In this document: piece after piece, positions 37,284 to 63,392 of the stretch
Numbering within the stretch: the first letter of the stretch is position 1
How the letters are laid out: the number at the start of each line of letters is the position of its first letter
Source of the DNA: Bugula neritina
Taxonomy: Eukaryota > Animalia > Bryozoa
DNA length: 64,000 bases
Assembly (NCBI GenBank): GCA_964035545.1
Contig: OZ037766.1
Span: 23,052,767 to 23,116,766 of the forward strand
Direction of reading: 5' to 3'
Program-made: the position numbers and the translations under genes
Notes under the pieces: model-generated
The model's input: the letters and a program-made list of their open reading frames with translations, nothing else
Told to the model about the DNA's origin: nothing
The model's database searches: none

Positions 37284-39403
<2,120 letters not shown>

Positions 39404-40189
39404 ACTGAAGCTCCCAAAAGTGCGTTGCACAATGTTAGAACTGTTCCTATTAACTTATTTGCTTTGAACATTTTGTCTAGCATTGTAATACTACATCAAC
39501 TTAATATATGGTTGCTTAGGTCAATTTGTCATCGAAAAGAATTTCGAAGGATATGTGCCTAAATTTGTTTTTCTAACCAATAAATTTTCTCCAAATATTC
39601 TGTGGCTTTATGAAAATTGTAACAGGTTTGCAAAAGCTGTGCATAATTATTTGTTGTCCAACTCAGGCTTCTGGACAATTTCAAGTGCCATGTTGGAATA
39701 TATTGCACAACTTCGGTTTAAATTCTTTCCAAGTGTAATGTAGGCCACTGAAATAAGATGTGCTGTGGCTAGCGCTATTTGGTAAAATTTAGCTAGGGCC
39801 ACAATATCCGTGTTCTATTGATGACTTGATTACAAAATACTATGGGTCATGTTTAAAAATTACAGCTGCAGTCTGTATGATTTACAACAGAATATATTAT
39901 GGAATATTAATATGATGATTTTCCATTCTCAATGTTCGCATGCCATATAATATAAATTTGTTTTCAAAGTGACCCTTTGCACAAGTGTTGGGTCACTGTA
40001 ATTCTGATTGGGGCCAGTCTGGTAAATCTGGAAATTATAGTACAAAAGCATTTGAATTAAAATCGGGAGTTGTCTTCTAACTTGAAGTTGTTGCAGCCAA
40101 TTTATTGTAATATGTAAGCATTTGCAATGATGTGTGTATTACTTTTTTGGGTTTAATTTGTGTGAAAGTATCTAAAAAAAAGTGAAACA

Positions 40190-44873: not shown

Positions 44874-47800
44874 ATGGCAAAAATATCAAGTAAGTCAAAG
44901 TGAAAGTGAACTGTGATTGTGAAGTTCAAGTTGTGTTTTACTTTTCACATTGATTATAAATATGTTTAATACTTCATGTTTACCTTCAAGTTAAGCATTT
45001 ATGTAGCTCTTGCTCTATTTATAATTATAATATTAATATATGTACTAATTTAAATTAGTATTTTTATTAATTAGCATAATGATAATCATAATGCCATAAT
45101 GATAATGTCAATGATTAATCACTATCAGATTATCATTTTGATTAATATTATGATTATGATAAATATATTATAATATGATGATAATCCTAATAATAATCCT
45201 AATTAATACTATCTTTCAATTTGATCTAAATCTGAAAGTGAAAGTAAATTTAATTCTAATCTAAATCTAATTTCGCAATGACAATGTTTTACTTTTGCAT
45301 TGAATAAAGTATAACCATAATGGTAATAAACTCATGACGATAAACTCATGATATTAATAATAATTGGTATTACCTCTGATTACCTCTGATGAGGTAGAAC
45401 GCTCTTGACCATCATATGACGTTAGTAGAGCGCCTCATGTGTGTGACAGTGAGTGCTCCGTTTTTTTTTTAGTGCTTCCGCATTACCGCTGATATTATTC
45501 AATTTAGATAGTGATATTTAAAAGGAAAATTGATAGGTAAGCTAGGTAAATCCTCTCATGTCGCGTATCGTTCTTGGTAAGAAACTTTGGTGGTAACAGC
45601 TAGAGCGAGAAGAAATGGAGTTGGGTAAACCTTGGGCTGCTGATCTCGTAGTTACGGACATGAGAGAGCGATTTTCCACAACCTCATCATAGTCTGATGC
45701 AAGTGTACTGTGTGTGGCTTCAGACTGTAGAATACGTGTCAATAGTGTGAGTCTATGATTTTTACGCCTCGTTTGTAATGGTAGTAGACCCAGTTCGCAT
45801 CGAGCGTCACTAACACTCTCTCGCCCCTTGAGACCTGATATGAACCTCACAGCACGATTCTGAACCATTTCTATATCATGTATGGTGGTTTTTAAATAAG
45901 GATCCCAGAGGGTATCTGCATACTCCAACAATGGACGGCAGAGGCTGGTGTAAGCCAAGAGTTTGCCATTTTTTGGAGCATCATGGAGAGCAAACTTTAT
46001 TGCTCCTAGGACTCTGCTAGCTTTTTGTGATTTCAGCACAATGTGTTTGTCAAATTTAAGGTTACTCTGCATGGTCACACCGAGATACTTGGTCTCTTCA
46101 GTCCATTGGACAGGTGTACTCCCAAGCTTATAAGATGGAAGGCCTGTTTGGCGACCAAATGATATAGCATGGCATTTACTTTCATTAAAAGGCATCTTCC
46201 ACTGTTGGGACCAGTTATATACTGCATCGATATTGACCTGGAAGTCTGCAGCATCTGCTTCTGAGTTTACTCTTTGGTACAACAGGGTGTCATCTGCATA
46301 AAGACTGACACAACAATTGACACAACTTGGTAAATCGTTAATATAGACCAAGAATAGTGTGGGTCCTAGTACAGATCCTTGGGGGACGCCCGATGTTACT
46401 GGGAGCTCAGTTGAGCATGAGCCTTTGATTACAACTCTCTGTTTTCTGTTGGTGATGAAATCTTGAATCCAATTTATAATCTGTGGGTTAACTTCTGGAA
46501 TGCGACGTAGTTTCAGTAGTAGTAGGGAATGGGGGACTTTGTCAAATGCTTTTTTAAAGTCTAGAACAATTGCATGTGTGTCTTGTGATTGGTCGTGCGC
46601 TTTGGCAATGTCATGGTATGTTGAGCACAGCTGAGTATCGCATGACATTCCCTTCCGAAAACCATGCTGCCTGTTGTGAAGTATATTGTCAAGGGTTGCA
46701 TTCAGGTAGTGCAGGATTATGTGCTCAAGCATTTTGCACGGAATGCTTGTGAGAGAGATAGGCCTATAATTCTGTGGTGATTCCTTGCTTCCTCCTTTAT
46801 GTATTGGGGTTACATTAGCAAGTTTCCACTCTCTTGGTAGTTTTCCAGATTTAAGTGAGGCATGGTATATGTGCTGAAGACAAGTGGCATTTATTCCAGT
46901 ATCAACTAATAGGTCTGGTTTTCTTATGCCGTCTGGCCCCGGTGATTTACCATTTGCCAAACCTCTAATAAGTGACTCAAGCCCCTTGATGGATATGCAT
47001 ATGTTATGAGTATCACTGCTATAATTTGGATATTGTGACACCTGGTGATCTTGGCAGAACTGACTATAAAAATAACTGTTCAAGATTTCAGCGCATCTCA
47101 GTGAGTTGTCAGTTAGTTGATTAGTATCAGGGTCAGTAAGAGACATAGAAATATTATCTTGACCAGTTTTTTGCCTCAGGTGTTTGAAAAAAGGCTTGGA
47201 ATTTCCCCTCTCTAATGGTTTACATACCTTCTCAACTACATAGTTCCTCTTCTTGTGACGAAGCAATGTTTTGCAAGATTTTCGCTCTGTTTTATACTTC
47301 TCCAAGAAAAACACATCCCTTGTTTTTTTTATACTTAAACCAAGTTTTTCTTTGCTTTTGAGCAAGCTTCTTTGCCTCCTTATCAAACCAAACAGGCCAG
47401 CGAGAGTTTTTTGATTTTAAAACTTTTGTAGGAATGTGATTTTTGCAAGCCTGCGCAAGACCTTCTCTAAAAAGGAGCCACATGTTGTCCGGGTCTGACA
47501 TGTCCTCAAGTTTGTTACAGACAGTTTGCATACTGTCTCTGAAACCAGTTATATTTGCATTTTTGTATAGTTTAATTGTTTTCGGTTGTGTTTTTAAGAG
47601 ATTTGGTCTATGGCAGGTGAGCACTGCAGTGACGATGTAGTGATCACTGAGACCCGGAGATATTATATCAATATCTGTGACTAACGCTGTGTTATTGGTA
47701 CAGATTAAATCCAGGATATTACCATGAATATGAGTGGGTTGCGTAACAAGTTGTTGCATCCTGTTTTCAAATAACATGGTGAGAAAGTCCAAGTGTACAG

Positions 47801-50800
47801 ACTTGAATTTTGCACCATATTTTAGTTTTCTGGTTTCCCAGTCTATTTCAGGGAGGTTATAGTCACCAACAAGAATGATGGAATGATGATGGTATTTGTT
47901 GGTGATGTGTTCAATGACATTTCTCAAAGCTGCCATGTTTAGCATTGATATGTTTGGTCTATAGTAGCAGCATATTATAATGCTGTGTTTGATCTGTACT
48001 ACAACCATTTCTTCGCCCAAAGTGTCGAGTTCAACTTTAGTTGGCTGAAGCGAATTCGCTGCTGCTATAAGGACCCCGCCACCATGAATATTACGGTCCC
48101 ATCTAAATATGGTCTTGCTTTGGCTAGAGAGAATGTCACAGTTGTTTATAGTGTCATCAATATGTGTTTCTACTAAACAAACTATATCATATTCAGATGT
48201 AATGAATTGAACTTCGGCCGTTTTCCCCTTAACAGACCTGGAGTTTGCCAAAAATAAGGCTAGTGGGCTCTCGCTACACTGTTTAATGCCGGCGTCAGAC
48301 GCTTCCATTCCCCCGAGGGTTGCTGACATTCAATTTGCAGATTTCTTATTCTGTATGCAGATCCAGGGTTGTCACTTTTCAGTCCACGCACACACTCACG
48401 GAGGGCGAACTCTTGGTTGCGGATTTCCTTGCTGGCATCTAGCTTGCAGAAGACTTTGTCACCTTTAAGTCCCCAAGAGTTCACCCTCTTTATGAAGGCC
48501 CATTTAGATTGGATAGTCTCAAAGATAACTTTTATGGGTCTAGCGGTTTCCGCACTCTTTTTTCCGAGTCTTAAGGCTGCATGAGGTTTGTCGAGGTTTT
48601 TGAATCTTTCTTCTCTCATGAATTTTTCGACCTGCTCTAATACCGGTATTTCATCTCCTTCCGGCACACCATATAGAATGGCATTACATTTTCTAGCATC
48701 TGCCTCACTTATTTCATTACTTTTCTGCATCAACTTCTCAGCATTTCTGTTTACTTCAACAGCCTTATTCATTTGCACTGTACTTTGCTCAACAAGCTTA
48801 GAACATTGATCTTCTAGGGACTTTATGTTCTCATTGTTACTCTTTAGTGTATCAGCATACGTGAGTTGCATGCCTTAATTATATTATATTGCAAATTTAA
48901 AACAGACTTTCTTTTAATTGTAGTATTAAAGTGAAATTTATATTTAATATTTTCAATTTATATTAAATGGCCAATAGATTTAATGTTGTTAACAGTAACT
49001 GATTAAATTTTGAAAAAGCAGTGAGTGAGTGATTTAAATTGAAGCAGAATTAAAGATGGATTGTTAACCTTGAACTCGAACTTAATGATAATCAAATGTA
49101 TTGACTTTTTTAATTTCTTAGTTTTACATGTTGGCGTTTACACATTACTGATTAGTGACTACTAATACCCTGTTTCATCAGAATCAAGGCTCAATGTATT
49201 AGTAATTTTAGGGTACTTTGCATCTGCCTGTCACTGTTGCTATAGGCTTGTCAATATGAGTATGGCTATTGATAAATTCAATAATTATATTATGATTAGG
49301 CTATGATTCTAATCTAGTTCAACGCTATACAAGAATACCATCACTATGATACCATGTATTTACTATCTAACACAGTATGTTACATGAGTATTTCTAGCTA
49401 TGCCCAATTATCTTAGCTTGAGCACTTATATGTGCTATATTTGTTTTTTATTTTATTGATTCTCTAGTAAATTAATAATTTAATATTCTTTTAACTCATG
49501 TGTTACAACTTATTTCTTCAAATTTCATAGGTGGGCCCGTGGTAGAAGTTGAGGGGGATGAAATGACTAGGTGCGTATTACTTATATACATAAACTTTTC
49601 TATGGTCTGTTGATATTATCTTTAACTTTCTAAAAGAGGATAACATGCCAATGGTAGGGGTTGAATCTTGGCAGCACTAATTTGCTCATTGGTGAGGAGT
49701 AAGCCCCTATCGACTGCTACCGAACTCAACCCCCTTCCCTTTTTAACTGCATGTTATTTTCTGTATTATCCAACACGTAACTAAGAAAGGAAAACTGATG
49801 TCATAAAATAAGAAGTATAAGTACAGTGTTTTAGCAGTTGGTTCAGTAAGAAAACTCTCTATTTATTTTTCAATGAGGGTGTCAAAGAATGTTTAGGTGA
49901 AAGCAGGAGCAAAACTTGCTTTGAAATTTTTATGCAGAATTATGACAATGACCATTATATGAGCAAGATGCTGAGTTTAATGATTAGACATTGTTTGTTT
50001 AATTAAGACAAATGAAATCTGTTTAATTAACATGGCTGTTTAGCTAATAGAATAAGTTGCAAGTATCAACTCATTTTTAGGATAATTTGGGACTTGATAA
50101 AAGAGAAATTGATTTTTCCTTGGGTAGACTTTGCTGGCCAGTTGCACACATATGATCTTAGCATAGAGAACAGAGACAAAACTGGAGACCAAGGTAGCAT
50201 ATTTCTCTAGTCCGTAGTGTCCACTAATTTTTATAACAATCTCATTAAAACCATATTGATAAAATCCTGTTTTATTTTTCAATTTTGTTACAGTCAAGTT
50301 TTTCCTTTTCTTTATATTATATGACTGCTTGTATAACAGATTGTTTGCCATATTGCAGTAACCGTGGACTGCGCCAATGCTATAGCCAAATACAACGTAG
50401 GAATAAAGTGTGCAACTATCACTCCTGATGAAAAGAGAGTCGAAGGTGAGTGCACAGTCACAAATAAATTCAATCATAGGGTAGTTATCAGCTTATTAAG
50501 CTGACTGCCACAGCCGCTGCTCACCATTATTTCTTCTTTCTAGCATATTCTAAGTAAATCAAATATTAAGTTTGTAGCTTCATTTTATCTGATTTTATTT
50601 TATCCTATTGAGCTGTAAAACTCCTCTCATATAAAATATGTTTTCTCTTTTTTAAAAATTATTTCAAACAACTAGCAAGCACCTGCTAGTCAGGTTATAG
50701 TGAGTGTATGACAGCTGTAGTCACACTATATATATGACATAAAAGCACCTGCATGCTAGTCACTGTAAGTGTTTATGTGACAGACACATTTGCTGGTATT

Positions 50801-53680
50801 CTGTAGAGTTTAAGTTGAAGAAGATGTGGAGGTCCCCAAATGGAACAATTAGAAACATACTAGGTGGCACTGTCTTTAGAGAAGCCATTATCTGTAGAAA
50901 TATACCCCGGCTAGTTCCAGGATGGACCAAGAGTATTGTAGTTGGACGTCATGCATTCGGTGATCAAGTATGTTGCAATATGTTAATATATTCATACACA
51001 GGCTTATCCGCATGTGCAATGTGTATAATTGTATACTTCCTCATTATAAATAGTGTATTGCAATGTTGTTTTCCTCTCTTCTGTTTAGTATAAAGCCACG
51101 GATTTTGTTGTTCCTGGAAATGGAAAAGTAGAAATTAAGTTCACTCCAGCTGATGGCGGTGAACCAGTGAATTATGTGGTCCACGAGTTCACCAAAGGGG
51201 GCGGAGTTTCTATGGGAATGTTCAATACTGATGAGGTACTCGTTCTATGCTGAAGTGTTTAAAAAGCCGCTCTATCAGTTGTTGCTACCTGCTTTGTAAT
51301 TAGCCATGCTCCTTTTCTCTAATTTATACATCTTATCTTGTAGTCCATCGGCAATTTTGCGCATAGCTCCATGAGCTTTGCTCTACAAAAAGGTTGGCCT
51401 TTGTACCTTAGCACTAAGAACACCATTCTTAAAAAGTATGATGGAAGATTTAAGGATATTTTTCAAGATATCTATGATACGTGAGTGTAAATCATTCTAT
51501 TTAATGCATGCCTTTGCCTGCAATGTGTTATCACTGTGCCATAGTCTACAGCCAATGTACAACAGCTGCTAGCCCATAACACTTCTGGTGATCGTTATGT
51601 CACACTTTCAGTGGTTTTATTTTCTAAGCACGGAATTTTTCTATGACTGGTCGACAAATAAAATAAGACGAATGTTCTTGAACAAGCGTATTTTTGTATT
51701 TAAATTGAGTAAATATCGTTTGAAATGTTGTTTATTTAAAAAAACTATATGTATTAATAAATATTTCAAAATATAAGGAATAGTTGTACGATATTCTGTA
51801 ATGGCATTTATTGTAGGCAGTACAAGGCAAAGTTTGAAGCAGCTGGCATCTGGTATGAGCACAGACTGATAGATGACATGGTAGCTTACGCTATGAAGTG
51901 TGAGGGAGGTTTTGTCTGGGCCTGTAAGAATTATGATGGAGATGTACAATCAGATTCTGTGGCCCAAGGTACTAGATATAGAGTTCTCTTATGCCTGTTT
52001 TTTAAGGTATATCATCAGTGATGGTTGTTTATTCTCCAACTTGTATTTGATAGGGTTTGGCTCATTGGGCATGATGACTAGTGTGTTGATTTGTCCCGAT
52101 GGCAAGACTGTTGAGGCGGAAGCCGCCCACGGTACGGTTACCAGGCATTACAGATTCCACCAACAAGGAAAGGAAACATCAACCAACCCTATTGGTATGC
52201 AATGCTTACAAACCGTTTATACTTCACATGATATGATTGCTAGTCTCTCAATATGGTTGTAAGGAGGTTTCATAGTGAGGGTATCTTAGCTTTCATTCAC
52301 TGAACTCCTTATACCAGTATAAAGGATAGGTCCTGTTTATGCATGACATGGCAAACGTTATCGTCTTTGCAAGTTGCATGCCTTGTAGATAAGAATGATT
52401 GATAAATATTAAATAGCATGCAGTCTAGCAGTCTAGCCGGTGCTGATAATTTGACTAGTAAGTAGTAACAATAGTAACCCTCAAAATGAAATCAAAAGAA
52501 CTTTGAACTTTGTTGAAATTTACGCATTTGCCTTCACCGGCTAGTCACACATATAGTACTCATTTTACAACTGCTTCTAGAACTAGGGCTGTCAATTTAT
52601 TCAACAAAACTATTAATTGTATGTAAATATTTATATTTCATTCACTCCTTTACTTAACCAGTATCTTAATTTAATGTTTCTTGTTGGAGCCATTCATTTG
52701 AATTGACATAAATTTAGTTCTATTGGGTAGCAGCACAGCAGTACAGATAGAATACGACAGCCTGGAAATTTATTATAATTTGTGGGTAATAGGTTATTGG
52801 TTAGTATATGATATTGTACTAGTAGGTAAATAATAAATGTAGTAGTAGGTATATGATACTGTACTAGTAGGTATATGATACTGTACTGGTAGGTATATGA
52901 TACTGTACTAGTAGGTATATGATACTGTACTGGTAGGTATATGATACTGTACTAGTAGGTATATGATACTGTACTAGTAGGTATATGATACTGTACTAGT
53001 AGGTATATGATACTATACTAGTAGGTATATGATGAATGTACTAGTAGGTATATGATACTGTACTAGTAGGTATATGATACTGTACTATAAAGACGTGCTT
53101 GTCTCTGTAGCTTCTATATTTGCGTGGACTAGAGGACTGGCCCACAGAGCTAAACTAGACAGCAATGCTGAGCTTCTGAAGTTTGCTGACAACTTGGAGA
53201 CTGTTTGCATTGAAACAATAGAAAGCGGCTTCATGACTAAAGACTTGGCCATATGTGTGAAGGGAATGAGCGGGTAATTCATCTGTGGAGTTTGGTTATT
53301 GTAGTTAGTTACTATACTGTAGTTAGTTACTATACTGTAGTTAGTTATTATACTGTAGTTAAATACTATACTGCAGTTAGTTACTATACTGTAGTTACTA
53401 TACTGTGCTGTAGTTGGTTACTATACTGCAGTTGGTTACTATACTGTAGTTGGTTACTATACTGTGTATAGTTACTATACTGTAGTTGGTTACTATACTG
53501 TAGAGTGTAGTTGGTCGCTAAATGGTAACCTAAGTAATATCTATTCTGTATTTAATAAGCTGGTTAGTATATTATCACTGCCTCCCTATTTATTTTAGTG
53601 TCAAGCGCGAAGATTATCTGAACACATTCGAGTTTATGGACAAGTTAGCAGAGAATTTGAAGCTAAAGATGGCCAATTGA
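44874..53680 (+). CDS. IDH1: Cytosolic NADP-dependent isocitrate dehydrogenase (IDH1-type)
   Basis: Exons 44874-44889, 49531-49570, 50081-50193, 50359-50445, 50807-50967, 51089-51235, 51344-51480, 51817-51968, 52054-52194, 53111-53273, 53599-53680. Motifs: [60 protein letters not shown]; no N-terminal presequence. Confidence 0.96.
45542..47386 (-). CDS. LINE ORF2 C-terminal part: reverse transcriptase
   Basis: [56 protein letters not shown]. Confidence 0.95.
   Translation of the reverse strand: MIRRQRSLLKSKEKLGLSIKKTRDVFFLEKYKTERKSCKTLLRHKKRNYVVEKVCKPLERGNSKPFFKHLRQKTGQDNISMSLTDPDTNQLTDNSLRCAEILNSYFYSQFCQDHQVSQYPNYSSDTHNICISIKGLESLIRGLANGKSPGPDGIRKPDLLVDTGINATCLQHIYHASLKSGKLPREWKLANVTPIHKGGSKESPQNYRPISLTSIPCKMLEHIILHYLNATLDNILHNRQHGFRKGMSCDTQLCSTYHDIAKAHDQSQDTHAIVLDFKKAFDKVPHSLLLLKLRRIPEVNPQIINWIQDFITNRKQRVVIKGSCSTELPVTSGVPQGSVLGPTLFLVYINDLPSCVNCCVSLYADDTLLYQRVNSEADAADFQVNIDAVYNWSQQWKMPFNESKCHAISFGRQTGLPSYKLGSTPVQWTEETKYLGVTMQSNLKFDKHIVLKSQKASRVLGAIKFALHDAPKNGKLLAYTSLCRPLLEYADTLWDPYLKTTIHDIEMVQNRAVRFISGLKGRESVSDARCELGLLPLQTRRKNHRLTLLTRILQSEATHSTLASDYDEVVENRSLMSVTTRSAAQGLPNSISSRSSCYHQSFLPRTIRDMRGFT
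47292..48329 (-). CDS. LINE ORF2 N-terminal part: apurinic-like endonuclease
   Basis: NSRS, LVETH, DR..HGGGV, YYRP, GDYN, LDL, SDHY. Separated from the RT by one extra A in the A8 run (47323-47330). Confidence 0.9.
   Translation of the reverse strand: MSATLGGMEASDAGIKQCSESPLALFLANSRSVKGKTAEVQFITSEYDIVCLVETHIDDTINNCDILSSQSKTIFRWDRNIHGGGVLIAAANSLQPTKVELDTLGEEMVVVQIKHSIIICCYYRPNISMLNMAALRNVIEHITNKYHHHSIILVGDYNLPEIDWETRKLKYGAKFKSVHLDFLTMLFENRMQQLVTQPTHIHGNILDLICTNNTALVTDIDIISPGLSDHYIVTAVLTCHRPNLLKTQPKTIKLYKNANITGFRDSMQTVCNKLEDMSDPDNMWLLFREGLAQACKNHIPTKVLKSKNSRWPVWFDKEAKKLAQKQRKTWFKYKKNKGCVFLGEV
48260..48871 (-). CDS. LINE ORF1 (truncated; coiled coil plus RRM-like region)
   Basis: TYADTLK, coiled coil, [16 protein letters not shown]...RPIKV motifs typical of CR1/L2-group ORF1p. 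Confidence 0.8.
   Translation of the reverse strand: MQLTYADTLKSNNENIKSLEDQCSKLVEQSTVQMNKAVEVNRNAEKLMQKSNEISEADARKCNAILYGVPEGDEIPVLEQVEKFMREERFKNLDKPHAALRLGKKSAETARPIKVIFETIQSKWAFIKRVNSWGLKGDKVFCKLDASKEIRNQEFALRECVRGLKSDNPGSAYRIRNLQIECQQPSGEWKRLTPALNSVARAH
49645..49726 (-). mobile_element. Degenerate tRNA-derived SINE head
   Basis: Minus strand GGTAGCAGTCGATAG (A-box-like)...AGATTCAACCCC (B-box-like). Confidence 0.35.
52843..53085. repeat. Minisatellite, 22-bp unit, ~11 copies
   Basis: Unit TAGTAGGTATATGATACTGTAC. Confidence 0.95.
53300..53503. repeat. Minisatellite, 18-bp unit, ~11 copies
   Basis: Unit TGTAGTTRGTTACTATAC. Confidence 0.9.
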
Positions 53681-53710
53681 CTAAATGTTGCAATATCCAG
53701 CAAGCTTTAA
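53678..53710 (+). other. Predicted stop-codon readthrough extension of IDH ending in PTS1 (X-LNVAISSKL*)
   Basis: TGA CTA AAT GTT GCA ATA TCC AGC AAG CTT TAA, in frame with the IDH CDS. Confidence 0.8.
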
Positions 53711-54465
53711 CTATTCCACCCGATACTTTTAGTAATTTATCTTGAAAGATCTGTAGTTTATGCTTATAGTTATACACTATGAACATCAACTGCAAACTCC
53801 GTAATGAATAGCTAGTTCTGTCTTATTCATTGTTTTTTTTTATAAATTTAGTCATGTCTTTTATGCAGGACCAACTGTTTGTATTGTATTTAGAGTTTAG
53901 ACTTATCTGTGCCTTAATAAGTGCTGTGATAACTGTAAAATGTAATTTCTTATATGTTAATTATTTATTAGTTTTAAATGACAAAAGATGTTGAATGATA
54001 ATTTCCATTTAGAATGCTTAGGCTGCAGACTTTAAAGATGTCTGAGGTATATTGCTTTGTCACACTGCAATAAAGATTATATTGACGTACAAATTTTATA
54101 GAGTTGATTATATAGGGTGATAATAATTGACAGTCAAAAGTCATGATCAATGATACTTAAAATACCTAAACTAGGAAATGGCACTGTGTATTCAAAAGTC
54201 TTTCAACATGTTTACTACTCAAACTTGTACATTATGTTGCCAGCTTTTATAGTCATTGTAAAAATACAATAAAATGTCTATTCCAAGTATATGAAGTTGC
54301 ATGATAATCTAAGTTGTTATGTATATAAAACATAAGTTAAAAATACTAGCACCAAAAAGAGACAAAAATAATGGAGATTTGGGATGAAGTAAATGACTGC
54401 GCCTACTACTAGGTATGTAGGGGCAGCTGTCTCATTCAGCATCTGCTCGATAGATAGCAGGCATC

Positions 54466-57400
54466 TTACTTGTTGGGTGCTAACCCACAAGGCTGCATGA
54501 ACTCCTGACCTCTTTCATGAAACCATTTGTTAGCAACTACAATAATGATTATCATCATTTAATATACAAAATATGTGTATAATTCAAATTTATCCACGAT
54601 GATTATGTAATCACCAAAGTTTCAGGTAAACACTTTACTAAGCTCCTTAGTGTCATGTACCTAAGGCATGTCAACCCATCTGTTCAGTCTTGCTATACTC
54701 TGAGTATCATGCAGAAAACATGAAGCTATTAGTTGTAAAATATTTTAACAATAAAATCTGACTAGTTAGATAAAATGATGTATGTATATATTATACACAC
54801 ACACTCTTGAGCACACACATATACAGTCTATAAAATGTATATATAACCCAATATGCAACAATACAAAGTTTCTCTGAGCTTTTAATCATGAATTAGACTG
54901 AGTACTAACCCCACTTGGACCCTGAAAGTACAGGGCAACCAGCATGCCTCATCAAGTCATTCCCTTGTCCATCAGGCTTTAGATTGAACCAGAAGGCAGC
55001 AGAACCCTAGAAACAGATACTCTGTAACAGCATTACTACCACAAGAATGGGTGACAACCCTTATCATTTTAGTCGTCAAAACAGCAGTTGTGGTAACAAC
55101 TGAGTCCATATGACATCAAATCTAGCTATTCTAGTACGATTATATAATATAAAATAACTTGGTGAGATGTTTTCCAATTTTTAAATTTAACCTATTAAAA
55201 CAGTGAATAAAGCTACATAACTGTTGGATATGTTACTTCAAGAGCTCAAACACACTACAGGCAAAGTTTTTTTTATTACATTTTATAGTATCTGAAGCTA
55301 ATTCAGTTCCTTTATTTCATATCATTTTCATGTTATTACATTGCAACAGTGATTTATAGTTTACCGGCATGATTAAGCACTATTTCTAGTTGGTAAAAAT
55401 GCAAAGTAATGGTTAATAATAAACTACCTTTTTCGGAGGAATTTTTGCTCCAAGTTGGGTGAATACAGTCAAACCACCAGCATCTACCTCATCAAACTAT
55501 AATCATCATGATAAATAATAGTAATAATAATACAATCGAATAACAGCTTTTTTACAACTTTAAAGTAACTCGGTTTACCAAAAATTTCAATTTTGCTCAA
55601 ATTAGCATATGTAACATCTCTGGCACAAAAACTATTTCACCATTGCAAAGGGAGAACAATTTCAGTCAACCACATGCACCTTTATGAAGCAATTTAGTAA
55701 TGATTCTGTAAGAATATAGAAGTGTGGCTTAGCATATATTGTGCAATTTTATTTTTACCCAATGTTTGTGCCACAGAATCAACCAATCATATTAACTTAC
55801 ATAGAAAATGAAAGTAGCGATTCTGTTACCTCTACTTTCCTCAAACTGTCTAGCGTCTACAGACTATAAATGAATGATCAAATATGGTGAGTGTAATGAG
55901 AATAAACATAGAACAAGCGTGTGACGCTGTCACCCTGCGACCCACCACTACCAGGAAATCCCACCACTACCAGCCCCACCACCTGCTAACTTACATAATA
56001 TATCCACGTGGCTATCCTATTGCCTTCTTCCGGAGGGAAGGCCGACATCTCTTTATGCCTCTAAAACCACCACCAGCATGCTAAGATATTATATTCTTTA
56101 TCATCAAATGCACAATTATCAACTGTGTTGCAGCTGTGGTTTTGGTTGGTCAGTTGAGGCCACTGCATGTTTACAGTATACAAGAGCTAGACAAAAATGC
56201 CTACATTTTGATTTAAATACCTTAGTGTGAGAAGCTGTCAAACAATATCTTAAAAACAAAGAGAAATATTAAAATTATACAATGCAATTAGAAATTTTTA
56301 AGCTCATTTAAACAGCCTAAAATGAAATTAAACAAATTTTATAGGAGAAGAATGTTTAATAATGCCTAAATGACTCATAAATTATACTTCAATAATAGTT
56401 TAGCTCTCACCTATCATGGAATCTATGTATATCAAAAAGTTGATAAACAGCTGAAAACCCTTCGAGAATGAAGAGAGAACGATGGATGGAAGCAGTATTC
56501 AGACAAATTGAGAAGAAAGAATACCTAAGGTTTGGAGTGGAGGATAAGTTACTCGCACTGAAGTAGGAAACTTAAAAAGGGAAAAGTAATTAAAGCTTGC
56601 AAAGGAGAAAATGGGAAATTTGTAGTGTCAGATAACAGCTATCCTACAATGTCATAGCACTGCCGCTTGTTGATAACTAAGAAGATTCCGGGAGAATGGA
56701 GAAAAAGTATTTTGGTACTGATGCTTAAATAGGAAAGATACATCATGATTTTATAGAAATTATATAGGTATTCCACTGATGTGTATTGTAGTTATATGAA
56801 ACAATAAACTAATGATAATATTACGGAACAAGAATGAAAGCTTAAATTCGTGACTATAAATTTGGCTCTATGCTGGAAAACGATCAGCCGCCATTTTCAC
56901 AATAAGACAACTGCAAGAGAAGCACCGGGATATCAACCAGCTTTCCACGATGTGTCCATGGATCGTGAGTTCCTAGAGAGGAAGTACTTTACTTCCAGAG
57001 GTTGAAAAGGATGTCAACAAGGATCACAATATTAGGATCATAAGATATGAAGGCACATGTGACTAAAAATAATGAACCTTGCGATATCATAGTTGCTCTG
57101 CACTAATTCACTCAGACTTTACTGCCTTACTACTATAAATTTACTGAAGGCTTGAAAGAGTAGAAGATGTTTCCCAACGATGAGTCTCTCTGCAGTGCAG
57201 ACAAAGAAAAGCTGAAAAAAGATCGAGAAAAGTGAAGGGCATAGTTTGATGACCGAAACAAAATCTATGTGAGCACCAATGGAGAAGTGTAAAGTTGGGT
57301 ATAGGGCAAGTACCATGGAAAGAGTAATTTTAAATGCATAGAAAGCTGAATTGGCAAGAAGGACGAGGAAAACTAAAAACAAATGATGGATGTGTGACAT

Positions 57401-60400
57401 GAAGGTACCAGCTAGAGAAAATGGAAAACAATCAGTTAGGTGGAACAGCCATTATTGCTATTTTCAATGTATACTTGAAATCTTCAATAGGAAAGCGAGA
57501 AGTACAACTAAAGATAATAGCAAGTAAAAGAAGTAGGTTGACACACAGCTATAAAATAATAGACAGAACTCACACAGGTAAAGTGAAAGAAAAAAGAAGA
57601 CCTCAAATCATTAAAAGTAGTATGTATAGGCAAAATCAAATCAATCTGAACGTTGAAATGAATTAAATGTTGAATGCCCGTACAATCAACACCTAAAAGT
57701 TCAATAAAACTTGAACGCACAATATAAAGTCAATGTAGGGCTATGAAAAAGAAACTTGTGTTACATTAATTGAATTTACAATTATTTTTCAGAGCAAATC
57801 TGAGGCTTTACCCTTAAAATGACACTAAATAGAAAGCAGCATCTTGTACTATAAAAGAATTAAGTATCTGTAAGTCGAAGCAGAAAGGATCAACCATGAA
57901 GAAGGAAAATTATAGTATTGACTCAAGAAAGATATTTCATAATTGAAAAATAATCTCTGCTGAATTGAAACTTTAAAAGTTAAAATTAGTCTTAAATATT
58001 TAAAAGATCTTTTTTTCTAAAAAATCTATGCATTAATTGAAGTTTAAACTGTTTGGAACAGAGACACTGCTTTCCAAATTACAGTTGTTCATGTTATTTC
58101 TATAAGACACTTTGCTTTGATTTTTGGAAAGTTTTTTTACAACCGAGGTTTAATTATATTCAACAGTATATTTTTCATATCATATGAAATGCCTTCAAAT
58201 ACGCAGAATTTTTTTGTAAATTTCAATAAAATTAAATAATTGGGGCTAAAATTAGTTTCAAAATAAAATAAGTAGCTAATATTGCTGGAACTATGCACTA
58301 TAAACCTAGTAGTATTTATGGAATAGAGTAGAGATAATTGGCATACCCTGGCATGATCACAGTGAGGCTCATACTGACCACCGATACCATAATTCTGAAT
58401 CTGAAATGTACACAACATAATAATGTAAAACAGCTAACAAATGAGAAACACTTGCTCCTAAGGTAAACAATAACATACTCATCACCCCAAAAAGTACGTA
58501 CGCTCGAGAGCATGTGTCTGTGTATATGTGTGTATACATGTGTATACATGTGTGTGTGCGTGTGCATTCATGCGTTTGTTTACACACACATATACAAAAT
58601 GAATTGCAATTGAGAAATAAAAACTAGTATAAAAAATCACCTGCAAGTCTTCGGCTTTCTCCATATTCAGATGTGTTATGGCACTTATTCTGTTTGACAA
58701 AGTCTGTATGGTGTCATTCATTTCATCTTTAAGCCAAGCACTAAATGACAAATACAAAATACATGTACTTCATCAGTTCTATTATCAACAATCCAATCGC
58801 ATATAGATTTATTATTGTATACTCATGTATCATGTACATCGCTTAGTATTGTTTTGCGATGTATTAAGGAACATAAAAAAGATGTTTTATTGGAAAATTG
58901 TAACTTTTAAGAAATTTGGAGTGGAGAACAACAGAGCAAGGTAGACAGAGTATGGTATAGCAACAGCTTACTGACTGAGTGACTGAATTGCATAACATTG
59001 TGTAGTCTAATTAGAATTGTATAGTAATTAGTAACACACTCACCTTCTACTAACTCTGTAGTGAGCAGTCACTAGTTTGCCTGTAGCAGGGTCGTTTACA
59101 GTTGCTCTCTTCAACTGAAATATTTTGAGAAATTAGTAGCAATAATATTGTTTATTATAAGACATAAATACTAGTAAACAATAAACTCAGTAAGATCATT
59201 AAACCTTGAAACTGGGACACTAAAAATTCACTGTGCAATGTTATTTCTTTATAAAAATATTATAGTTAGTATTCAATTTATTACACACAAAAACCTAATT
59301 AATATCAGTCTTTTGAGGGAAGACAACTTCTGCACTTGACTTATCGACTAACATTAACTCTAACTAACTTTCTGGAAACCTAAACAGCCATTTTGACTAA
59401 CTGATTCAATCACTTTACTTAACTTACACCTAATTACCAACATTGATTTCTCACAAAGTAATTTTGGCCAGCCTACTGAAATATTTGAAATTTCTTATTG
59501 AATTACTTCACTAGGTTAATAACTCACTTTCACAAACTTTCTGAACCACTTCGACTAACTGACTCAGTCAACAATAAACTTACCATTGGAGTTGAAATCT
59601 CTTTTATTATTTTTATTTCCTTATCACTGATGACATCATGATAGAGCACAATATAGGGGTCGAGGTAGTACTCCTCCACTTTAACAGGAGCAAGTATAAG
59701 CAGTGGATTATCACCAGATGTGGTGTAGTAGCACGAGAGCTTGTGTACATGGGGGTTTGGCTGGAAGTACAGGACATACTTGTCACATTAATCATCATTA
59801 CCCGAGTCAATGACTTTAGTTTGTAGCAAAACAGTGATACCTAGTTGAGAGAGTAATATTGGCAGATGGCTCTCAAAGGTAAAACTAGTAAAACGCCCAA
59901 AAGCCCAACTAGCCAATTGAATTAGCAATAACATTTCAAATTATTATTGAAAATAAAATAGCAGAACAATTGAGAAAATTTCTCAACTAAATTAATGAAA
60001 AAAAACTGTTGCAAACTTTTTTTAGCAAATTTAAGAAGTATTTCAAACTAAAATAAATTTTCACCTATTAGAAAGTATTATTAAAACAAGTTTTATACAA
60101 AATTAAACCAGTTTATATAAAATGCAGAAAAAACATAGAAAGTTGAATTTCTTAGTAGGTAGTTGAGAAGCTGCTTTAGCTTTGATGACTCACCAAGACA
60201 TCTTCACCGCGACACAGCGCTTCATATACTTTAAACTCCTTGCCACTTCTGTATTCATCAGTAACCCTCGGATTCTTGAGGGAAGGAAGCACATCCGGGT
60301 GGGGTGCTGCCTGCCCCTCACTTTCCAGTTTAGCCGTTTCTTGCTCTATCTGTAGTTAAAAAAATTTAGAAATCATATCATTTGGATTCTTATATACTTG

Positions 60401-61895
60401 ATTTTTAAAAGTATTAAAAGCTAAGTAATTCATATAAGAGAGTAGGTGGTAATAATTCTACAGATCACATGTGGGATGGTCTTCTAGAGCTTACCTTTGA
60501 AAATTTACAGATAATATAAAATAATTTAATCCTTGCAATTTTATGTAAAAGTATTTTGACAATAGGTGTAATGAAAAAGGCTTTTAGTATAATGATAGCC
60601 TCAATATTACAGATTGGTTTATAAAAAACACTGTTAAACAACTGAAATTAGTAAAACTTGTACTTGGTAGTTGTACGACAGATAAACACACCTCTTTATT
60701 AAAGTACAGCATATTACTTAATGCCCGGTCATGGTTAGGTTCTAACTTCAGCCATTCTAAAGTCCAATGCTTGGCATGGTGAACATTCCCTTGCTACAAA
60801 ACGAGATTCCTTCATTATTGGACAGAGTATGACAGTCTTGACTATCCATACTCAACACTTATGTGCCCAGCAAACATTTCATGATTCAATCATTTAATTC
60901 CTCAGAGCATCTTGCAATCTTTAATAACTGCTACATTTCATAAGTTGAATAAAAAATATAAAGTTCTAACATCAAAACATCACAATATATTGCCTAATGA
61001 TGACAATAAAAATACGAATGAAAGATAATATGTAGGCAGGTGTGGAGTTGAAGCGTGTGTCTGACAGAAGTTGGTGCTGAAGAGTGGGATTAGATGGTTA
61101 TTGAGAACAGAGGAAAAGTTGGATAACATGTGGAGAGAAGCTAGAAGCTTTAGACATCCAAAAAGAAATGAAAACAAGGAAACATCTCTTTGCATAGATA
61201 AAACATCAATACTCCAAACAACAAGCTATTCACATTCTCAAGACTGGTCACTGCAAATATCAACATACAATTAGTACCGGATTTAGTAAGCAAACGGCAC
61301 AGTTTCAGTTAGAGGAGAACGTGATGCACCTGCCCCAACTCACCATTGTAGCAGCATAAGATAGATAGTCTAGAGTCTGAGATCTACTGATTGTTACATT
61401 CTCTTCAGTATCCAATACATGTAGTGTTTGAATCATCCATGAGAACATATGATGCCAATCCTGTTTGCCGTACGCATAGTAAGCCAGTTGAAAGCAGTCA
61501 AGTGCTAAGGGTAAGAAAGAGCGGCCATGAAATTAAATGTGCTGTTGTTACATTATGTACATGCGGAGGTTAGATAGGAAGAGATTGGTTAGTCTAGCAC
61601 ACTACAAGTTAGAGTACAAGCATGCAGATAGGAAGGAAGGCAAGAGTCCCTCGCTAGCAGAAGACACCAGAAATAAGGCTACACTTTAATAACCCAATCT
61701 GAGCATCACAGTCCCGTGTGCAGCTGCAACAATGACCATAGCAGCATTTTTGAGTTGACCATTTAGTTGATATTAGTATCAGGTGCCTAATTGCTGTAAT
61801 CATGCCACAATAAAGAAGTTAAGATAGATTTTGAGGAAATTCAATGCAGAGAAAAGTAATGTAGTAGTAACGTAGTAGTAGTGGTAGTAGTAGTG

Positions 61896-61949
<54 letters not shown>

Positions 61950-63392
61950 ACGCAGTAGTAGTAGTAGTAGTAATGTAGTAGTAGTAACGTAGTAGTAACG
62001 AAGTAGTAGTAATGTAGTAGTAGTAGTAGTAGTAACGTAGTAGTAGTAGCAGTAGCAGTAGCAGTACTATTAGTAGAGTACTATTAATAATAACTGTAAT
62101 GGTGTGGTGGTAGAGCAGAGACTGTAGAGCACAAGAGAGATGTTTAGCAGAAGATAATTGCAAACTACTGATTTGCATAAATTGTGAAAACAACCAATCA
62201 GCTCACATTGTAGCAGGCGAAAGCCAGATAGTCAAGAACAGACGAAGGTGAAACAGTGTGGTTTGCCTCTTGCTGGAGACGTTGGTAAGCCTCATCCATC
62301 CAGATGAGAGCATGATAATTGTCTTGATAATTGTGGGCGAACGCACCGAAGTTGAAACAGTCCAACGCTACAATACATTTTATTAGTAATTCGGAATAAG
62401 CATGCGGAAAGTGCCAACTTCGTATACTGTAATAGTAAGAAAGGCTCAAGCAATAAACAACAGGTTGACAAGACAAATCTATCAATTTAACCTGAAAAAT
62501 AGGATAGGTATATTAGTTCATGCTATACACATGCAATACTAAACATTTCACATGCTGATTGCAAACTCTTAACTGTTGCACAGTTAACAGGAAACATTAA
62601 AAATAGAATAGAATAGAATAGAATACTTTGGCTACAGATCAACACTTAAAATCTGATTACTTCCATTTAACATAACCAGCAAGTAGGAATATGTCCATTG
62701 CACTTTACAAAACGTATGCAACTCTATAGCCCAGTGTTCCTCTGCTGGTTTTACTGACTTATAATGTGGCACTCTGACAGTTATTTGCAAATATTCATCA
62801 ATTTAGCACAAATTTCAAACAATATAATCAATAAACTAAGCAGTGGTTTGGGGTCATGATACCCACCCGACATTGGTGGAGATCTGTTGGTAGGGGTGAA
62901 GGTTCCATCAGCTATTTGCTGAGAGGTGAGTTGATACGTATCTTGTAGTCTCAAGATGGCCGCTACTACTCCTTCAAAGTCTTCTTCATCTGGCAGGTAA
63001 GGCTGATATTCTTCTAGCAGCTGCAGAAACTCTGCAATAGATAATCTCAGTGTACTCATATTTCCATATATTATAACTAATGAATAGGAATCTTGCCACA
63101 ACCAACAATGTAGAGAACTGCGTTTGATGTTTCTAAAATCAAAGTAATTATTTTATTATGTGGCTCATCCCTTTGAAAAAAATATCAACTACACCCAAAG
63201 TTTCCCTTGAAACTATTTAATATTAGTCCTGAGTTACCTTCAGAGTTTTGTTTACCAGACACCAGTTCTTTGGTTTTTGGTAAATCAGTGGTAAACGTCT
63301 TGACAAACAGGTAGGCATTAACAGGATTGGCGACGTAGCTTTCTGCGTCCACTAAAGCTGTCTCTGCATGTCTCTCATAACTGTCAGCCAAT
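54466..63392 (-). CDS. P4HA: Collagen prolyl 4-hydroxylase alpha subunit (5' exons outside the window)
   Basis: Exons 63392-63238, 63031-62867, 62367-62207, 60793-60692, 60349-60194, 59760-59584, 59114-59044, 58740-58641, 58400-58347, 55863-55801, 55496-55428, 55006-54910, 54536-54466. Motifs: NPVNAY, RLQDTY, YEALCRG, NYGIGGQYEPHCD, GNRIAT, RHAGCPV, SKWVANKW. Confidence 0.95.
56460..57430 (+). mobile_element. Decayed RTE-clade LINE fragment in a P4HA intron
   Basis: Interrupted RT motifs KKIPGEWRKSILV, NYIGIPLM, AIFTIRQLQEKHRD and VPREE, with many stops and frameshifts. Confidence 0.7.
61858..62066. repeat. (TAG/GTA)n compound microsatellite
   Basis: Long GTA run with GTG, AAC and GCA variant units. 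Confidence 0.95.

Follow-up and report, generated by a model that had tools for sequence, protein, structure and literature searches.

We wondered whether the bryozoan Bugula neritina hides a peroxisomal isoform of its NADP-IDH behind a leaky stop codon. The initial annotation of the window, a stretch of 64,000 nucleotides of chromosome 2, had noticed that the IDH coding sequence ends ...LKLKMAN-TGA without a PTS1 and that CTA and an in-frame SKL-TAA follow. This description of the 3' end was borne out by an 11-exon gene model and by an RNA-supported joint (53273>53599) into the last exon (Table 1).

Table 1. Features at the Bugula neritina IDH1 locus, in positions of the window.
Feature	Position	Strand	Remarks
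eEF1A	37700-39560	+	
IDH1	44874-53710	+	
IDH1 coding exon 1, MAKIS, without mitochondrial presequence	44874..44889	+	ATG, GT donor; loose RNA ends before 49533 match the exon in three runs
Non-LTR retroelement in intron 1, apparently intact	45542-48871	-	
IDH1 coding exons 2-10, outer bounds	49531..53273	+	RNA joints; GT-AG ends, phases; exons 3 and 5-10 match TIGR00127 nadp_idh_euk in order
IDH1 exons 2-5	49531-49570, 50081-50193, 50359-50445, 50807-50967	+	
IDH1 exons 6-10	51089-51235, 51344-51480, 51817-51968, 52054-52194, 53111-53273	+	
Minisatellite-like repeats, introns 9 and 10	52840-53090, 53305-53510		Units of ~17-23 nt
IDH1 last coding exon, terminus ...KLKMAN, without PTS1	53599..53677	+	AG acceptor; TIGR00127 positions 384-408 of 409
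Leaky stop context TGA CTA	53678..53683 (TGA 53678-53680, CTA 53681-53683)	+	Same in RNA contigs and Watersipora
Predicted readthrough extension LNVAISSKL, 9 codons	53681..53707	+	Watersipora LAGGHSRL, 3-nt indel
PTS1 tripeptide SKL	53699..53707	+	Orthologs have SRL/SKL/AKL/SSL/SQL at the equivalent place
Second stop TAA, closing the extension	53708..53710	+	Read from the sequence
Probable IDH1 3' UTR	53711..54273	+	AATAAA at 54069 and 54268; RNA contig extends to at least 53746; position of the 3' end provisional
P4HA-like gene	54472-63100	-	

The joined model (44874-53680, + strand; 412 codons) was translated and holds its frame with no internal stop. RNA contigs from three studies set the GT-AG joints of exons 2-11 and the first exon, and the start, MAKISSGPVVEV, is RNA-supported, with no presequence upstream of the conserved N-terminus. 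Database searches with the window gene were run one exon at a time, full-length queries being sequences of other organisms. Eight exons match the eukaryotic NADP-IDH family TIGR00127 in order and cover positions 20-408 of 409, in a per-exon search to which the whole-protein cut-off was not applied. Identity is 86.6% to Watersipora subatra (nine exons), 85% to an IDH of Haliotis labelled 'cytoplasmic' and 60% to Bugula IDH2 on C1; in a PDB comparison IDH1 entries scored above IDH2 entries. These comparisons place the predicted product with the cytosolic IDH1-type NADP-IDHs and not with IDH2.

IDH1 is the sole gene of its type in the genome (assembly tzBugNeri2.1, PMC11480708; 216,009,554 bases in 321 contigs). 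The other animal NADP-IDH found there is the IDH2 on C1, which ends TAG TTA and has a PTS1 neither before nor after its stop. No paralog therefore provides a peroxisomal NADP-IDH, and any such enzyme in Bugula would most simply come from the window gene. Two further IDH copies on small contigs contain in-frame TAA/TAG and have the look of ciliate contamination. The small contigs C35, C86, C128 and C190 carry IDH and MDH genes whose frames contain TAA/TAG, in the style of the ciliate nuclear code, and are probable ciliate contamination remaining in the assembly.

The gene order eEF1A, IDH1, P4HA-like is common to Bugula and Watersipora subatra. The retroelement in the first Bugula intron carries overlapping frames for an ORF1-like protein of 203 aa, an endonuclease-like protein of 345 aa and an RT of 614 aa, whereas intron 1 of Watersipora IDH1 is shorter than 300 nt. 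Repeats of the TACTGTAGT type, resembling those in IDH1 introns 9 and 10, also occur within an intron of the MDH1 gene on C3.

At its 3' end, the mature IDH1 mRNA contains UGA-CUA and an open, in-frame extension terminating in a PTS1, and there is no PTS1 before the first stop. The +7 base is A, giving UGA CUA A as opposed to the extended context UGA CUA G, and the tail has no acidic residue. Given the composition of the window, the exact combination of TGA-CTA and SKL* is expected at ~2.5e-6 per gene, or 0.05 per 20,000 genes, where P(next-stop peptide ends SKL)=4.5e-4 and P(CTA)=0.018 were taken from the window and P(TGA)=0.3 was assumed. The broad version, TGA-CT plus [SAC][KRH][LM], is expected at ~6e-5 per gene under the same assumed P(TGA), that is ~1 per genome. 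Judged on the window alone, a chance origin thus appears unlikely, as had been argued from the first inspection of the locus; conservation among the orthologs excludes it.

An Rfam search recovered no SECIS (53599-55500, E<=1), no readthrough element and no other credible match. The 150 nt 3' of the stop fold only modestly (z -2.3), and their hairpin is located past the second stop and does not align with Watersipora, so that we claim no stimulatory RNA structure. An antisense coding overlap was considered and rejected, the last homologous exon of the P4HA-like gene (54472-54546) being ~760 nt away.

We analyzed ten invertebrate IDH1 orthologs lacking a terminal PTS1, Watersipora among them, which were picked before their DNA was inspected. 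Watersipora, where eEF1A, IDH1 and P4HA are syntenic, reads TGA CTA followed by LAGGHSRL*. The two bryozoans are identical at TGACTA and at 9 of the final 12 bases, the spacer differs by a 3-nt indel that keeps the frame, and the sequence beyond is unalignable. TGA CTA was also found in Dimorphilus (6 codons, SKL), Haliotis (12 codons, SSL) and Antedon (6 codons, AKL), TGA CTG in Liolophura (8 codons, SQL) and Limulus (9 codons, SRL), TGA CTC in Branchiostoma (8 codons, AKL), TGA TTA in Paralvinella (10 codons, AKL) and TGA CAA in Lottia (8 codons, SKL). The partial model of Lamellibrachia satsuma, with TAA CTG CAA CCA TAG (LQP*), has neither TGA nor PTS1 and is a true exception. Overall, TGA is present in 9/10 orthologs and TGA-CT in 7/10, and the extensions span 6-12 codons. 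Strict PTS1 ends, [SAC][KRH]L, occur in 7/10; the count of PTS1-like ends rises to 9/10 with a relaxed set that was enlarged, by SSL and SQL, after the data had been seen. A shuffled-flank null gave a PTS1-like end at 0.002-0.004 per locus, and the kinship of the orthologs makes binomial figures overstate their independence.

Comparing relatives had been suggested as a check by the initial annotation, and stop context, frame and PTS1 are indeed conserved in Watersipora and in eight of the nine other invertebrates. Among metagenome transcripts, two show TGA CTA...SKL and TGA CTG...SKI and several other animal-like ones show nothing. As a negative control, the pairing of TGA-CT with a PTS1 was absent from ~65 bacterial-type IDH loci retrieved with a longer invertebrate IDH fragment. 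Kept context, frame and tripeptide combined with a free spacer are the pattern that selection on a readthrough PTS1 should produce. Judging from Lamellibrachia and the animal-like transcripts without it, such a signal can apparently be lost. Lamellibrachia is a gutless tubeworm which retains CT after the stop and has no TGA or PTS1, a possible loss; Paralvinella keeps the PTS1.

We consider it highly likely that functional UGA readthrough supplies a cytosolic and a minor peroxisomal NADP-IDH from the single IDH1 gene. By analogy with mammals and fungi, most ribosomes would terminate at the UGA to give a 412-aa cytosolic enzyme, a few percent would insert a near-cognate residue to give a 422-aa form ending in SKL, and PEX5 would carry this form into peroxisomes. 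UGA CU(A) alone suffices for readthrough in fungi and mammals (PMC4207609), the consensus is read through at a rate of ~4% (PMC4973966), and Trp or Arg is inserted at the stop of human MDH1 (PMC5133446). In yeast, peroxisomal NADP-IDH provides NADPH for oxidising unsaturated fatty acids (PMC9549241). A search of the Bugula genome limited to PEX14 and PEX2/10/12-type RING peroxins found both encoded. Our literature search found no ribosome profiling, proteomics or localisation for any invertebrate IDH, and Idh is not named in the main texts of Dunn 2013 and Jungreis 2016. Of the initial proposal, readthrough at UGA-CUA to a minor peroxisomal NADP-IDH stands as a prediction based on conservation, on RNA that retains the extension and on the peroxins; the idea that it is special to 'this lineage' does not, as the arrangement is widespread in protostomes and present in a crinoid and in amphioxus.

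The extension might be translated and selected but imported too weakly to matter, or might serve another purpose such as a degron or other targeting, with peroxisomal NADPH coming from other enzymes. Some orthologs do carry weak tripeptides (SSL, SQL, SHL), and the localisation of the extended form is a prediction. Against this, the sole conserved feature is a C-terminal tripeptide of the PTS1 type, Bugula has its strongest form, SKL, and IDH1 of outgroups bears a constitutive PTS1; we regard this explanation as improbable.

No better placed is the view that a premature TGA truncated an ancestral constitutive PTS1 and left an untranslated, decaying tail. Its starting point is reasonable, a constitutive PTS1 being the likely ancestral state of animals (sponge SRL, coral SRL, Trichoplax SKL). 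However, the spacer varies freely in sequence and, between 6 and 12 codons, in length, yet tripeptide and frame persist from bryozoans, molluscs and annelids to a chelicerate, a crinoid and amphioxus, and a neutral UTR would not have kept TGA in 9/10 and TGA-CT in 7/10 orthologs for that long. Conservation thus largely refutes the notion of a relic.

In a further rival reading, alternative splicing or RNA editing takes the place of readthrough in giving access to SKL. An acceptor AG at 53699-53700, part of a CAG, could yield ...KGMSGKL*, and cryptic PTS1s in fungi do arise via alternative splicing. RNA contigs from two studies span the stop and the extension, reaching 53746 and 53711, and they show the 53273>53599 joint only and an unedited TGA, although contigs drop rare variants. 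The mature mRNA therefore retains both the TGA and the extension, which contradicts mRNA processing that removes 53681-53710, an outcome that the initial annotation had named as fatal to its proposal. The alternative product would moreover be missing the final 26 conserved residues, there is no AG at the Dimorphilus tripeptide, and the conserved TGA-CT would be left unexplained, so that splicing or editing is very hard to sustain. Least credible of all is decoding of the in-frame UGA as selenocysteine, as there is no SECIS match, the position is not catalytic and one ortholog uses TAA.

Within the last exon, RNA contigs and assembly differ at three synonymous sites and agree throughout TGA, extension and second stop, a number of sites too small for a selection test. 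Public RNA contigs under the same species label disagree with the assembly across 49400-53750 at several percent of the coding positions, chiefly third positions, a pattern that would fit a diverged strain, or a cryptic species, of Bugula neritina.

How did IDH1 come to carry its signal behind a stop? Constitutive PTS1-like ends are found in the sponge Halichondria (SRL), the coral Oculina (SRL), Trichoplax (SKL), two hemichordates (SKL) and a leech (CHL), and also in vertebrates and some nematodes. Because of this distribution, the constitutive state is probably ancestral for animals. The readthrough type is distributed over spiralians, arthropods, a crinoid and amphioxus. Mapped by hand on the accepted animal tree rather than on a protein tree, the readthrough state is explained equally well, in 3 steps, by a single gain at the nephrozoan base followed by two reversals among deuterostomes and by three gains, in protostomes, echinoderms and cephalochordates separately. 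In every carrier the TGA follows one conserved helix position by 8-10 residues, and this near-constant placement favours one origin; the vertebrate tails, as short as that of Trichoplax, favour retention of the old state. As a side observation, sponge IDH1-type proteins measure ~450 aa and have N-terminal extensions, that of Halichondria also ending in SRL, and a single sponge gene may supply the enzyme to mitochondria, cytosol and peroxisome alike.

A cytosolic MDH1-like gene of Bugula (C3:2,691,492; TIGR01758 match) ends ...ALAACSD TGA CGT and continues to REVTKSHL TAA. We regard it as a second candidate for a readthrough PTS1 in this genome; its UGA-C context is weaker and its terminal tripeptide is SHL. 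Readthrough of MDH1 has been described as a vertebrate feature (PMC5133446). It is tempting, though doubtful enough to be offered only tentatively, to suppose that a single recoding event in the protostome-deuterostome ancestor was reverted in vertebrates, hemichordates, nematodes and the leech, and that Bugula obtains both peroxisomal NADP-IDH and NAD-MDH1 through readthrough. If true, Bugula would take MDH1x outside the vertebrates.

The conserved arrangement closes an annotation gap, the predicted peroxisomal isoform having been overlooked in many invertebrates by gene callers, and widens a four-species prediction of 2014 into a six-phylum pattern, good comparative evidence for readthrough as adaptation and not error. 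With its repeated switching between a constitutive and a readthrough-gated PTS1, IDH1 offers a tractable case for the tuning of NADPH partition between cytosol and peroxisome.

That readthrough PTS1s in invertebrate IDH might have been noted before was rightly suspected. Stiebler et al. 2014 reported that D. melanogaster NADP-IDH has the UGA CU context and is predicted to gain a PTS1 by readthrough, and their Fig. S3 gives TGACTA with a PTS1 for IDH of Drosophila (SHL), Apis (SKY), Tribolium (ARL) and Aplysia californica (SKL), next to constitutive ends in vertebrates and Ustilago; imaging concerned the constitutive Ustilago tail only, the readthrough IDH cases being predictions (PMC4207609). 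No further survey of IDH readthrough came to light in a literature search of partial coverage. Bugula shares with these insects and Aplysia the enzyme, TGA CTA and a short in-frame extension ending in a PTS1, and differs in representing a new phylum, Bryozoa, with a 9-codon extension of unrelated sequence. The groups added here to Fig. S3, as judged by sequence, are bryozoans, annelids, chiton, limpet, abalone, horseshoe crab, crinoid and amphioxus.

Vertebrate MDH1x and mammalian LDHBx likewise gain a hidden PTS1 on a cytosolic redox enzyme through UGA CUA readthrough (PMC4207609, PMC5133446, PMC4359377), but they are NAD-linked, use UGA CUA G and are experimentally proven, whereas the Bugula enzyme is NADP-linked, uses UGA CUA A and is predicted. 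Pre-duplication yeast IDP2 (Yanagida et al. 2015, PMC4526572) is also a cytosolic NADP-IDH partly routed to peroxisomes by a signal after the stop; there a +1 frameshift bypasses the stop, while the Bugula PTS1 lies in frame behind the UGA. Constitutive PTS1 IDH1 of vertebrates, hemichordates, Trichoplax, coral and sponge is the same enzyme with the same destination, yet without recoding and with the tripeptide on every molecule, unlike the Bugula signal behind its stop. Neither mechanism nor enzyme is new, and the added value is a modest one of phylogenetic breadth; set beside these systems, the Bugula arrangement is real, conserved and very probably functional.
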